DNA of 64,000 nt from Bugula neritina (lineage: Eukaryota > Animalia > Bryozoa): the NCBI GenBank assembly GCA_964035545.1, contig OZ037769.1, positions 14,662,633 through 14,726,632 on the forward strand, in the 5' to 3' direction. The notes under the pieces were generated by a model that was not told the origin of the DNA, made no database searches, and saw nothing but the letters and a program-made list of their open reading frames with translations. Below, one piece after another: positions 33,415 to 38,239 of this stretch. The translations under genes and the position numbers were made by a program. Every line of letters begins with the position of its first letter. Position 1 is the stretch's first letter.

Positions 33415-34734
33415 ATGGGAAACACAATTCCGGTTCTGAAGGCACAAGATTCTGAATGGTTTGGTTTTGGGTTAACCGCTGCAACTTTTGGTTTCTCATT
33501 TATAAAAGAATTGGTTGATATTTATGATAATTTTCAAATTGGAATCAAGAGGGATAAAGAGGAAAAAATAGCAGCTAGAAATGCTGTAAACGCTGAAAAC
33601 GCTGAAAACGCTGAAAACGACGAAAACATCGAAAACACCGGAAACGCCGAAAATCCTGCAAACTCCGAACACCCTGAAGTCAACAGGGACACATATATAG
33701 AAGCCAAGGATGATTTTAAGTATAGTAAAATTGGTTGTTGCTTGCATTTATTATGGTTGATTCTAATAACAACTGCATCAGCTATATATTTCACCAAAAG
33801 CGAGTCATTTCTCTACGAGGAGGCAGTAGGCGTGAGCAGCACAACAATCAACATCTACGGAGCAGCAAAAGCAGTAAATTTAAAAACCGGAAACATAACA
33901 GTTTGGGATGCAGATGACGTTGTTACACCAGCCCATGTTACAGACCAATTTTTTTTAATGACCAAGCTGATTAAAACTGTTTCTCAAAGAAGAACCATAT
34001 GTACAGATGAACCTTCTTCTTTGAGACCAAAATGTAATTCTGATGATGATTGTGAGTTTTTAAAACTGATAGATTATAGTGACGGATATGCTAATGGAAC
34101 TTGTGACATGGCCAGAGGGACTTGCTATGTCCATGCCTGGTGCCCAGTCGATACTGAACCTACCTCGAATGAATTAGCTGAAGAAATATTAGACGGTACT
34201 GGTAATTTTATTGTACATATAAACACTTCTGTGATTTTTCAGTTTGCATATAGTGGCTTAAAAAGTCCGAACTTTAACAAATATAATTTATGCCTAAATA
34301 AAGGTGATGGAGAAAATAAAACTTGCCCCTTTTTAAGAGTAGAAGATATTGTAAGGAGAGCTTTAGAAAACCGAGAAAATAATCAGTATACTTTTCAAGA
34401 CATAGTCAATCATGGTGGAGTTTTTTCAATTGTAATTGATTGGAAGTGTACGTATGAGAAGGATGCAGTTAGTCCTGAGTGTGATCACTCGTACAGCTTT
34501 CGATTTCTTCAAGGTCAGCGTGGCTATAGCTATACTGATGTGGATCATCAAAGCAAAAACAGTCGACATTTTCGAAAAGAAGTGGGAATGCTGTTTTTTA
34601 CAGAAGTACACGCAAAGGGAAAAGCTCGCTCTTATGTAAGATTGGTATTTAAAAGCGTGGTAGCATTTTTAGCCATAAAAAGTATTGGAACAGTGCACAA
34701 TATTATTCTTAGTATAATAGTTGCCAATTCTTAA
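33415..34734 (+). CDS. Divergent P2X purinoceptor-like ion channel 1 (intronless ORF, 439 aa)
   Basis: P2X motifs WDADDVVTP, FFLMT, C-x5-C, GTC..GTCYVHAWCP, NFIVHINTSVIF, CPFLRVEDIV, GGVFSIVIDWKC, C..SYSFRFL, R..RKEVGMLF..V.AKG. Ten ectodomain cysteines; TM1 and TM2 present. Confidence 0.92.
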   Translation: MGNTIPVLKAQDSEWFGFGLTAATFGFSFIKELVDIYDNFQIGIKRDKEEKIAARNAVNAENAENAENDENIENTGNAENPANSEHPEVNRDTYIEAKDDFKYSKIGCCLHLLWLILITTASAIYFTKSESFLYEEAVGVSSTTINIYGAAKAVNLKTGNITVWDADDVVTPAHVTDQFFLMTKLIKTVSQRRTICTDEPSSLRPKCNSDDDCEFLKLIDYSDGYANGTCDMARGTCYVHAWCPVDTEPTSNELAEEILDGTGNFIVHINTSVIFQFAYSGLKSPNFNKYNLCLNKGDGENKTCPFLRVEDIVRRALENRENNQYTFQDIVNHGGVFSIVIDWKCTYEKDAVSPECDHSYSFRFLQGQRGYSYTDVDHQSKNSRHFRKEVGMLFFTEVHAKGKARSYVRLVFKSVVAFLAIKSIGTVHNIILSIIVANS

Positions 34735-35817
34735 CGTTATTAAAAAAATAAATGCAATAAACTTTGAATGATTGCTTCACGATTGAGAACTACTTGCCTT
34801 CTAACAGATTTATAACTTATTTACAGGATGGAATATCGATGCAGCAACGTTTTGTTAGTTCTTTACGCTATAGTATTACACAGAAAAAGTTATAAAAAAA
34901 AACAATAAATACATACTATGTGTAACAATTTTAATGAAGTGTGTATTGTCCACTGCAACTTGCTTAGATGACCTATAGTAGAACTATATTAGATTTATAA
35001 GTTTGTGTTTCCTGATTCTTTGCAGGAAGTTTCAAGATTTTGGTGATTTATTTGCTGCACATTTTCTATGTAGTATTTAGGAAACAAATAGTATTTTGGT
35101 TACATACCAATTTTAGCTAAAATATGCAAACTAATTTATTATTAAATCACCTTTTTAGCATGCTGCAATAGTTTTTTAGTTTAATAAATGAAATAGAGAA
35201 GTTGGAAACTGAATTTCATTTCTTGCATTTGCTGTATGAGGATTTATTTAACTGTTATTCATCAGTTAAACTTTCAAACAACAAATAGCTGCGGTTATAA
35301 AGACTCACTATTTTGAATATTTCTGTAACTGAAGAATAAATGTCTTGTAATTGAAAATTTTTACCCTAACCTTTGCAACCAGTCTATTTTTATATGCATC
35401 ACAGTTAAATGTACTTGAAATAAGAACATACAGAACGCCAATTAGAATAAACTACACAAATACTTATATAATGATGCCTTAAGAATATAACATATGTTAG
35501 CATATCTAGAAGCTAAGACAAGCTAAAAATATCTTTAAACATGTTATGTAGGCAGCGATGCCAATAATTATGCTGAAGACATAAAATCACTTGCCAGAAG
35601 TGATAAATGTTTATAAACACATCCTTATGTTATGGTTGAATGCAAAGAATGGAGTTAAAAATTAAACTGTTTAGATTAACTGTCTCTATAATATTTACAT
35701 GAAACGTTGCAAACTCAAGAGTTAAATACTAATAGTGTGTTTACACAAATAAAACCTCTGTTATCAACAATGTTTATGGAGTGTTAGTAAGAGCATCAAA
35801 AGTAGTTTGTGACATAT

Positions 35818-36374
35818 TGTAGTAGTTTTGTGGGTGATAGAATGAAATCAGGCAGAGAACATAACTCCTTGTTATAGAAAAGACAAGAGAGAGAGGTTGC
35901 CGTGTGCTTGCAGTACTTTATTGTAGCAGTGAGAAGTGTCCAGTATGAGCTCCAGTCCGCAAGTCACTGAAGCTCTAAAATGCCTGTCCTTTTATACTGG
36001 TAGAACAAAGGACCTCTAGAACCTTCCACCGACAGCGGCCCGATGTTCGGCAGGGGATACCGACATTCGTCATGTCGGTAACCGACACTGGAAATATCGG
36101 TAACCGACATTCGGTCTGCCTGCATCCACCTGCCAAAATCGGTCCAACTGTCGGTTGACATGAATCAACAAAAATGAACCCAACCAAGTGTATGCGTATT
36201 GTAACTTGTAATTGGGGGAAAGGGGATTAACTATTTACTATGTTAAAAGCTCAACATTAGCCATAGTGTTTAAGGCATTAGAAAGTTAAGCTACATACTT
36301 AGCTGTGATTACAGTATTTAGACAAATAGCCATAAGTAATGTGTCAAGGGGGATAACTGCTAATATTTACCACA
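35818..36374 (-). mobile_element. Solo LTR (557 bp) with 4-bp TSD, Gypsy-like
   Basis: TGTAGTA...TACCACA termini; TSD atat at 35814-35817 and 36375-36378. Absent from the paralogous site (gacatatgtcaa, about 39270). Minus-strand TATAAAA (about 35990) and AATAAA (about 35918). Confidence 0.85.
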
Positions 36375-36519
36375 ATATGTCAAGTTAAGAATACCAATGC
36401 AGTAACTTGATACTAATTACATTCCAGTAAACCTTATGGGATGTGAACTATAATATATACCTTCATTATGTATATGTATAATATGGTAACTAAATAGCAC
36501 TGATATGTAACTATATATA

Positions 36520-36720
36520 TGTGTGTGTGTGTGCGTGTGTGTGTGTGTGTGTGTGTGTGTGTGTGTGTGTGTGTGTGTGTGTGTGTGTGTGTGTGTGTGT
36601 GTGTGTGTGTGTGTGTGTGTGTGTGTGTGTGTGTGTGTGTGTGTGTGTGTGTGTGTGTGTGTGTGTGTGTGTGTGTGTGTGTGTGTGTGTGTGTGTGTGG
36701 GGGGGGAGGGGGGGGTTGGG
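36520..36720. repeat. (TG)n microsatellite plus G-run upstream of P2X-like gene 2
   Basis: Seen directly; lies at the junction of the tandem duplication. Confidence 0.97.
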
Positions 36721-36949
36721 GAGAAGGATGTGAAGTGTCCTTGGAAATATGTCATCTTATTGGTTCACTAGCCTCCAATGATAATTAAGTATGATTCAAT
36801 CAATCAAGTCCTTTCATGAAAGAATGTTTTCTTGATTGATCAATCGAGATGCCATATATAAAATAGATTGAAAATTTCAACTACATACTTTTTATTGTAT
36901 AAAAACTGGCATACTATATTATAGGTATTGTTGAAGAACAGCAGCTGGA

Positions 36950-38239
36950 ATGGGAAACAATATGACCTTTTTGAGCGCAGAAGAGTCTGAATGGTTTGGT
37001 TTTGGATTAACCGCTTTACCTTTTGTTTTATCGTTTCTGAAAGAAATTTTTGACATTAGTGAAAATCTTTGTATTGGAAAGAAGAACAAAGAAAAGGAAA
37101 CGGCAGCTCGTAATGGTGCAACAACCAAAAATACTGAACACTTTGAAGACAAAAAAGAGAACACATATTTGGAGGTTAAGAATAATTTTAAGCACAGTAG
37201 GATTGCTTGTTGCATGCACATTTTGTTGTTTATTATATTATTCGGTGTGTCATTGGTCTATTTTTTCGGAAGTGAGTTGTTTTTCTATGAGGAGGCAGTT
37301 GGCGTGGGCAGTACAACCATCAACATTCATGGAGCAGCCAAAGCAGTTAATCCACACAATGGAAAGCGTACAGTTTGGGATGCAGATGACGTTGTTACAC
37401 CAGCACACGCTACAGACCAGTTCTTTGTAATGACCAAACTGATTAAAACTGTTTCTCAATACAAAACCGTATGTTCAGATGAACCTTCTTCTTTGAAACC
37501 AAAATGTACTTCTGATGATGATTGTGAGTTTTTAAAACTGATAGATTATAGTGACGGATATGCTGATGGAACTTGTGATGTGGCCAGAGGAACTTGTTAC
37601 GTGAATGCATGGTGCCCAGTTGATACAGAGCCTACCCCAGATGAAGAAGTTGAGGAAGTATTAGATGGGACTGGTAACTTTATTGTACATATCAACACCT
37701 CTGTAATTTTTCAGTTTAAGGAAATTGGACTACAAAGTCCGAACTTCAACAAATATAATGTATGCCTAAACAAAAATGATAGAGAATATGGAACTTGCCC
37801 TTTTTTAAGAGTGGAAGATATTGTAAGGAGAGCTTTAGAAAACCGAAAAGGCAATCAGCTTACTTTTCAAGATATAGTTAATCATGGTGGAGTTTTTTCA
37901 ATTGTAATCGATTGGAGCTGCAAGTATGAGAGTAGTGCAGTTAGTCCTAAGTGTAAGCACTCTTACAGCTTTAGATTTCTTCAAGCTCAACGTGTCTATA
38001 GCTATATTGATATTAATCATCAAAACAAAAACAGCCGAATTTTTAGAAAAGAGGTAGGAATGCTGTTCTTTATTGAAGTGCATGCTAAAGGGAAAGCTCG
38101 CTCTTACCAAAAACTGCTGTTGAAAAGTGTAGTAGCATTCCTAGCTTTGAAAAGTGTTGGAACAGTTCAAAATTTTTTGGTTAGCTTGATATCACTTTGT
38201 AAAAATTTTTCAAAGTGTAGTAGAAATGTTGAAAACTGA
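36950..38239 (+). CDS. Divergent P2X purinoceptor-like ion channel 2 (intronless ORF, 429 aa), tandem paralogue
   Basis: Same motifs and 10 cysteines as gene 1; flanks are also duplicated. Confidence 0.92.
   Translation: MGNNMTFLSAEESEWFGFGLTALPFVLSFLKEIFDISENLCIGKKNKEKETAARNGATTKNTEHFEDKKENTYLEVKNNFKHSRIACCMHILLFIILFGVSLVYFFGSELFFYEEAVGVGSTTINIHGAAKAVNPHNGKRTVWDADDVVTPAHATDQFFVMTKLIKTVSQYKTVCSDEPSSLKPKCTSDDDCEFLKLIDYSDGYADGTCDVARGTCYVNAWCPVDTEPTPDEEVEEVLDGTGNFIVHINTSVIFQFKEIGLQSPNFNKYNVCLNKNDREYGTCPFLRVEDIVRRALENRKGNQLTFQDIVNHGGVFSIVIDWSCKYESSAVSPKCKHSYSFRFLQAQRVYSYIDINHQNKNSRIFRKEVGMLFFIEVHAKGKARSYQKLLLKSVVAFLALKSVGTVQNFLVSLISLCKNFSKCSRNVEN

Follow-up and report, generated by a model that had tools for sequence, protein, structure and literature searches.

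What becomes of a P2X receptor once the residues that hold ATP are gone? To our knowledge, ATP opens every P2X receptor characterised so far, and the lysines that cradle the nucleotide are conserved from algae to humans. Two neighbouring genes in a 64,000-nucleotide stretch of a Bugula genome (hereafter the window; G000:C5:14662633-14726632 of a 216 Mb assembly) raise this question. The open reading frames ORF1 (439 amino acids; window positions 33415..34734, + strand) and ORF2 (429 amino acids; 36950..38239, + strand) are intronless and P2X-like, and their proteins are 71% identical. An initial annotation, made from the letters of the window, had described them as intact, intronless, tandem genes that have lost most of the ATP-binding site, and this description stands: both frames run uninterrupted, in tandem and on the + strand, and three alignments concur in showing other residues at six of the seven polar ATP contacts. 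From the sequence evidence set out below, we put at roughly one in two the probability that they encode ATP-blind receptors of P2X fold, in which a remodelled inter-subunit pocket would answer a different stimulus.

Both proteins match the Pfam family P2X_receptor (PF00864; ORF1, 136.6 bits, E = 1.4e-39; ORF2, 134.9 bits, E = 4.5e-39; gathering cutoff 27 bits), at scores well below the 350-390 bits of canonical paralogues from the same genome. The closest solved structures are P2X4, P2X7, P2X1, P2X3 and tick P2X. An AlphaFold2 (AF2) model of ORF1, computed as a monomer only from an input alignment of 86 sequences, reached a predicted local distance difference test score (pLDDT) of 87.2 and a predicted template modelling score (pTM) of 0.77. 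Hydropathy and the modelled helices place two transmembrane (TM) segments around a large, beta-rich ectodomain: TM1 at residues 105-128 (33727..33798, + strand) and TM2, the pore helix, which the alignment also supports, at residues 407-438 (34633..34728, + strand). When this model was compared with the PDB using Foldseek, the best 50 matches were all P2X receptors at probability 1.0, with target-normalised TM-scores (TMt) of 0.70-0.75 to chains of P2X2, P2X3, P2X4 and truncated P2X7; a look-alike search of the ESM Atlas returned generic P2X clusters only. Ten ectodomain cysteines (C196, 207, 213, 230, 237, 243, 293, 304, 345 and 356 in ORF1) align one to one with those of the canonical paralogues in both ORF1 and ORF2, as the initial annotation had said of the cysteines and of the fold motifs; the significance of these conserved residues is treated in PMC3853471. 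Because the Pfam match, the confident model and the exclusively P2X structural matches agree, the family assignment is secure, and we conclude that ORF1 and ORF2 are genuine P2X-family genes. The retention of all ten cysteines, whereas Dictyostelium P2XA has none of them (PMC3853471), argues for placing their clade in the animal-type branch of the family. Two deep branches of P2X receptors (P2XRs) are described in PMC10620158, which is silent on bryozoans and on loss of the ATP site.

Residue equivalences at the ATP site were established by three alignments (HMMER against human P2X4; MAFFT with five canonical paralogues from the same genome; MAFFT with about 100 P2X proteins from the library). 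In human P2X4 numbering, K313 is the only one of the seven polar ATP contacts that ORF1 and ORF2 keep. K67 has become N146 in ORF1, K69 Y148, T186 I266, L188 H268, K190 N270, N293 S372, F294 Y373 and R295 T374; ORF2 carries the same residues, apart from His (H127) at K69 and Ile at R295. K313 (K388 in ORF1) and R309 (R384 in ORF1) are retained in both proteins, and the hydrophobic contacts L214 and I229 correspond to L292 and F306 in ORF1. In zebrafish P2X4, the residues that hold the phosphates are K70, K72, N296, R298 and K316, and those in contact with the adenine are T189 and L191 (PMC4460280).

The replacements are concentrated in a few recognisable motifs, all placed by the alignments. 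The canonical beta-1 motif TTxKxKG reads TTINIYG in ORF1 (33841..33861, + strand) and TTINIHG in ORF2 (37313..37333, + strand). The initial annotation correctly saw that both lysines of this motif are gone, but its register was off, since they align to N and Y/H and not to I and Y. Its other readings of the site agree with the alignments: NFIVHINT (I266, H268 and N270 in ORF1; 34204..34227 in ORF1 and 37676..37699 in ORF2, + strand) stands for canonical NFTxxIKN, GYSYTD (ORF1, with S372 and T374; 34522..34539, + strand) and VYSYID (ORF2; 37994..38011, + strand) stand for GYNFRY, and the late lysine alone is kept, as K388 within FRKEVG (34570..34587, + strand, in ORF1). The canonical KRxLxKAYGILF is replaced by SRHFRKEVGMLF, in which the K313 and R309 equivalents are preserved. 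The resulting pocket is uncharged, with His268 in all copies and His127 in ORF2. A new N-T-S sequon has appeared at N270, the former lysine position, where a glycan may possibly be attached, and the old N-F-T sequon has disappeared. Among seven sequences the pocket motifs are invariant or nearly so, and the positions that vary belong to the N-terminus, to the TM segments or to the tail. Read from sequence, ORF1 and ORF2 lack the canonical ATP-phosphate cradle, and since that cradle is gone, a role other than homomeric ATP gating can reasonably be inferred.

The pore helix is altered as well, a feature absent from the initial annotation. TM2 of ORF1 places K413 at rat P2X2 N333, K422 at G342 and N429 at D349, and across the alignments the D349 position is Asn or Ser, with a register uncertainty of about two residues either way in both cases; the signature Asn, Gly hinge and Asp are thus absent from ORF1. 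TM2 of ORF2 carries K392 and K401 and is followed by a short tail with C417 and C423 (38105..38200, + strand; alignment and hydropathy). Introducing a lysine into P2X2 TM2 (T339K) raises anion permeability (PMC4460280). Since each subunit contributes two lysines to a pore from which the conserved Gly and Asp are missing, ion selectivity has probably changed.

The two ends of the proteins also depart from the canonical plan. The N-terminal YxTxK/R motif reads Y-[ILS]-E-[AV]-K, with Glu in place of Thr, and it is accompanied by 60-100 extra residues before TM1 that canonical P2X receptors do not have. In ORF1 this extension (33442..33621, + strand) is predicted, from AF2, alignment and hydropathy, to form a long helix at residues 10-69, modelled at pLDDT 77-92 and leading into a disordered linker rich in Ala, Glu and Asn (AEN); it includes a moderately hydrophobic stretch, which by hydropathy is weakly developed in ORF1 and more pronounced in the paralogues. 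Within that linker, residues 61-92 of ORF1 (window 33595-33690) form an AEN-rich low-complexity insert, NAENAENAENDEN..., which is missing from ORF2, and the linker differs in length in every paralogue. At the other end, the YxxxK tail motif is absent from the clade. A Cys-rich stretch directly follows TM2 in ORF2, in the paralogue L008 and in most clade members; the tail of ORF1 is the shortest of the clade and ends five residues past the TM2 helix. P2X7 has a C-cys anchor, a palmitoylated Cys-rich juxtamembrane segment, which the stretch in ORF2, L008 and most clade members may resemble. Unlike P2X7, the clade has no ballast domain, and ORF1 has no Cys-rich stretch.

A six-frame scan of the genome with PF00864 found five intronless canonical genes (350-390 bits), two spliced canonical genes and a low-scoring group (30-150 bits) confined to one contig (C5). 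This group comprises ORF1, ORF2 and L008, which are intact, and the pseudogenes L010 and L017. L008 encodes 470 residues and lies 153 kb upstream of the window. L010 (G000:C5:14487755-14488732) is a full-length pseudogene whose single stop is an in-frame TGA (SYSF*FLQ), accompanied by a DW-to-NC change; it was read through the stop with X at the break, and its B. neritina orthologue, P0002, is intact. L017 (G000:C5:14482222-14482470) has multiple stops and frameshifts. Both pseudogenes belong to the same clade without an ATP site and lie about 175-180 kb upstream of the window. The low-scoring group is a small birth-and-death family, 23-26% identical to the canonical paralogues, which keep the ATP motifs with the exception of L004. 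That gene (L004:1396-2577; G000:C5:7698645-7699697) is an intronless paralogue of canonical type (357 bits) in which the ATP site has been partly lost in an independent event: VTTSLTG stands where TTxKxKG is expected and GYNYYY where GYNFRY is, and NFTVLIKN and the late lysine are kept. A library relative of L004, P0010, has TTTKLRG, GYNYHY and an Asn for the late lysine.

Relatives beyond this genome were sought in two ways. A word-based protein search returned three, at 59-66% identity, on genomic contigs that have AY690838 in their names, under which the B. neritina mitochondrial genome is deposited (PMC2678162); P0001, the orthologue of ORF2, lies on Bugula neritina-labelled contigs. An exhaustive hidden Markov model (HMM) search with a six-sequence profile against 1.84 billion representatives yielded 448 P2X proteins, and the canonical motifs (KxKG, NFTxxxK, NFR and K) are present in nearly all of the top 150. 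The exceptions group with the Bugula genes in one monophyletic clade, with a Shimodaira-Hasegawa-like approximate likelihood ratio test (SH-aLRT) support of 100 in a quick IQ-TREE analysis (LG+G4, 103 rows). The Bugula genes sit on a long branch within this clade, and ORF1 is sister to ORF2 plus P0001 (support 96); the duplication is therefore older than the split from B. neritina, as those contigs are labelled. An exact-protein look-up of ORF2 across public assemblies gave no match.

Members of the clade have in common TT[IV]N[IV]YG, YS[YF]T, the TM2 lysine, a long N-terminus and, usually, a Cys-rich tail. Several have two hydrophobic N-terminal helices; these are strongly hydrophobic in P0014, P0011, P0009 and P0008 (marine metagenome; L022, L023), which suggests a four-helix membrane topology in those members. 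Some of the wider clade have extreme Cys-rich tails, and in P0014 CC-K repeats make up the last 90 residues or so. P0005 and P0009, on ENA metagenome contigs, are also intronless. The single named species is Watersipora subatra, whose XP_067940410.1 is automatically annotated "P2X purinoceptor 4-like"; the other members come from marine metagenome and SRA assemblies. XP_067940410.1 and XP_067940412.1 ("4a-like") fall in the clade with SH-aLRT 100 and share the loss of the lysine pair (TTINIAG), the TM2 lysine and the hydrophobic N-terminal extension, but they are only about 27% identical to ORF1 and keep more of the old site, namely the Lys in HFTLFIKS and the Asn in GYNFTD. We conclude that these proteins form a distinct P2X branch, so far found in bryozoans and unlabelled marine contigs only. 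A full-text literature search on P2X receptors found no description of such a clade without an ATP site, which is apparently undescribed. Because the replacement residues are conserved across the depth of the clade, the pocket has been remodelled and not abandoned.

The ratio of nonsynonymous to synonymous substitution rates (dN/dS) between the paralogues, a check that the initial annotation had proposed, points to purifying selection. Between ORF1 and ORF2 it is 0.35 overall (dS 0.53; Nei-Gojobori) and 0.24 [0.15-0.36] in the ectodomain; between ORF2 and its orthologue P0001 (dS 0.19) the ectodomain value is 0.12 [0.06-0.22]. On the terminal branch of ORF1 a parsimony count gave 26 synonymous against 15 nonsynonymous changes in the ectodomain (ratio of nonsynonymous to synonymous changes per site, pN/pS, 0.15; P = 3.7e-9). 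Binomial P values against neutrality range from 4e-9 to 4e-11, and in all three ectodomain tests (0.24, 0.12 and 0.15) P was below 1e-8. The ectodomains of ORF1 and ORF2 are under purifying selection. A pseudogene reading of the pair was rejected on these ratios and on the contrast with the real pseudogenes L010 and L017.

The reading that we favour, an ATP-blind receptor of P2X fold, would work as follows. The whole P2X architecture is kept, with two TM helices, a disulphide-braced ectodomain and, presumably, trimeric assembly. The cradle for the triphosphate and adenine has been exchanged for a conserved uncharged set consisting of Asn, Tyr/His, Ile, His, a possibly glycosylated Asn, Ser and Thr/Ile. 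The inter-subunit pocket would bind some other agonist of lower negative charge, or its new His and Tyr would make it a sensor of protons or metal ions. Occupancy of the pocket would then drive the usual gating movement from the ectodomain to TM2. What sequence and model show is the family, the fold, the loss of six of seven ATP contacts, the conservation of the replacements and the purifying selection on the ectodomain; that the proteins are blind to ATP, form trimers and work as channels, and what kind of ligand they bind, is what we infer. Gating without ATP is plausible because a labelled K69C mutant of P2X2 can be opened by zinc or acid without ATP (PMC4460280). More tentatively, these may be the first P2X-fold receptors gated by a non-nucleotide (a small uncharged or cationic molecule, protons, or Zn/Cu through the pocket His/Tyr), with a lysine-lined pore of altered and possibly anion-favouring selectivity, and thus a new class of trimeric channel that arose within Bryozoa.

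Several observations weigh against this interpretation. Outside the ectodomain (N-terminus; TM1; TM2 together with the tail) dN/dS is 0.3-0.9, with wide intervals that span 1, and such near-neutral membrane segments and termini fit a membrane anchor as well as a pore, although they are weak evidence either way. The Cys-rich tail has been lost from ORF1 through a 4-nucleotide indel relative to ORF2. Parts of the clade are being lost, because the terminal-branch pN/pS is near 1 in L008, L010 and P0002.

Among the alternatives, the one that survives best, though we regard it as unlikely, is that ORF1 and ORF2 encode ATP-blind auxiliary subunits that co-assemble with canonical P2X subunits and tune or suppress their ATP responses, since in a heterotrimer the number of intact ATP sites would fall and the pore would be changed. 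The initial annotation had likewise raised a role as modulatory subunits. Partners exist in the same genome, where the five intronless and two spliced canonical genes keep their ATP motifs except for L004. P2X heteromers are well established, human P2X2/3 heteromer structures are among the Foldseek matches, and the surface of the ectodomain is strongly conserved. The ATP site itself lies at the subunit interface, with K70/K72 on one subunit and N296/R298/K316 on its neighbour (PMC4460280). However, the clade is far from the canonical paralogues (the 23-26% identity given above) and carries an extra N-terminal module, so co-assembly is not a given, and the conservation of the replacement residues would be unexpected for a dead pocket.

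It is rather improbable that the proteins are still gated by ATP, or by another nucleotide or nucleoside, held in a reshaped pocket by K388 and clade-specific basic residues. The equivalents of K313 and R309 are kept, the hydrophobic adenine/ribose contacts persist as L292 and F306, and three additional basic residues, K152, R369 and R387, lie close to the site in the ORF1 sequence. However, conservation of R369 and K152 does not extend to the wider clade, and four basic and two polar contacts have been lost together. Receptors of algae and amoebae still have the first lysine, the algal one retaining equivalents of both K69 and K308 (PMC3853471), and mutating that lysine alone in rat P2X2 (K69C) leaves a receptor that is "generally ATP-insensitive" (PMC4460280).

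More doubtful still is that the P2X ectodomain has become a membrane-anchored binding or adhesion module, whose TM helices are anchors only and form no channel. Selection is concentrated in the ectodomain, the dN/dS intervals of TM1, TM2 and the termini include 1, and TM2, with its two lysines, is missing the conserved Asn, Gly and Asp. Yet a TM2 lysine is conserved clade-wide, which suggests a constrained role, and the full gating scaffold is kept at high model confidence. Faster evolution of the TM segments is also seen in canonical paralogues: in L002 and L003 TM dN is 1.4-2.3 times ectodomain dN (dS being saturated), compared with 2.7-4.1 times in the ORF1/ORF2 group, and the idea that the helices are mere anchors because they are neutral is weakened accordingly. 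Finally, the idea that the two genes are recent pseudogenes, or duplicates under neutral drift whose frames have by chance stayed open, is strongly disfavoured: two clade members in this genome are indeed pseudogenes and some sister branches have pN/pS near 1, but the ectodomain dN/dS of 0.12-0.24 (P below 1e-8), a duplication that predates the split from B. neritina with both copies still open, a conserved promoter and conservation of the clade as far as Watersipora all speak against it.

Set beside canonical ATP-gated P2X receptors (vertebrate P2X1-7 and the Gulf Coast tick P2X, PDB 5f1c), the ATP-blind candidates share the Pfam family, the predicted fold, the two-TM topology, the ten cysteines, K313/R309 and many body-domain motifs. 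They differ in the six replaced polar contacts, Y-x-E-x-K, the two TM2 lysines, the N-terminal extension, the missing YxxxK and, in most clade members, the Cys-rich tail. Other channel families have also changed agonist, among them the variant ionotropic glutamate receptors and the diverse DEG/ENaC channels, which are large families with variable pockets. The likeness to them would be one of concept only, a conserved scaffold with a rewired pocket; unlike them, the group described here has three intact genes and an almost invariant pocket. The initial annotation had gone further and drawn a parallel with ligand-gated channels repurposed as chemosensory receptors. Families of chemoreceptors usually have many members, with pockets that vary. 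Because the genome count gives a small family (three intact genes and two pseudogenes) and the pocket is nearly invariant among the paralogues, that parallel is unsupported, and we rejected an expansion of chemosensory type.

The sequence around the two genes is organised as a tandem unit of about 3.5 kb, made of a (GT)n tract, a promoter, the gene and a downstream block of 0.5 kb. The (GT)n microsatellites mark the 5' edges of the two units (32942..33204 and 36520..36699), and the B. neritina orthologue locus likewise has one. Over about 190 bp upstream of the ATG, the ORF1, ORF2 and B. neritina orthologue loci have a mean column identity of 82%, and this conserved segment presumably acts as a promoter. 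Upstream alignment places the putative promoter of ORF1 at 33225..33370 (+ strand), with TATAAAA at -51 from the ATG and CCAAT/ATTGG between -106 and -190, and that of ORF2 at 36759..36904 (+ strand), with TATAAAA at -52 and CCAAT/ATTGG at -175 and -191. Beyond the stop codon of ORF1 lie poly(A)-like signals. Also downstream of this gene is a non-coding block (35303..35817, + strand) whose partner, 80-90% identical, lies at 38745-39275. The genome holds these two copies alone, both in the tandem pair, and a mobile element was rejected on that ground. The identity of the blocks exceeds that at synonymous sites of ORF1 and ORF2 (about 62%; pS, the proportion of synonymous differences, 0.38), and possible reasons are constraint on a 3' or regulatory element, or gene conversion acting locally.

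The window as a whole is eukaryotic sequence, rich in AT (GC about 30%), and contains long microsatellites of dinucleotide type. The P2X-like pair sits inside a cluster of C2H2 zinc-finger genes. The window holds five single-exon ORFs of this kind with 6-11 fingers each, at 6753-7736 and 10435-11355 on the - strand and at 45715-47034, 51856-53106 and 55558-56442 on the + strand. Long (TA)n/(TATA) tracts follow ORF2 at 39375-40028.

A P2X branch, maintained by selection, in which the gating scaffold persists and conserved uncharged residues stand where the ATP cradle was would be new. Short and free of introns, the genes can easily be synthesised, and the question that they raise is therefore directly and cheaply testable. 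If the reading is true, the P2X architecture would have acquired a new agonist, or nature would have provided an ATP-blind subunit; either outcome would inform how the ectodomain is coupled to the pore and how ligand specificity evolves in trimeric channels.

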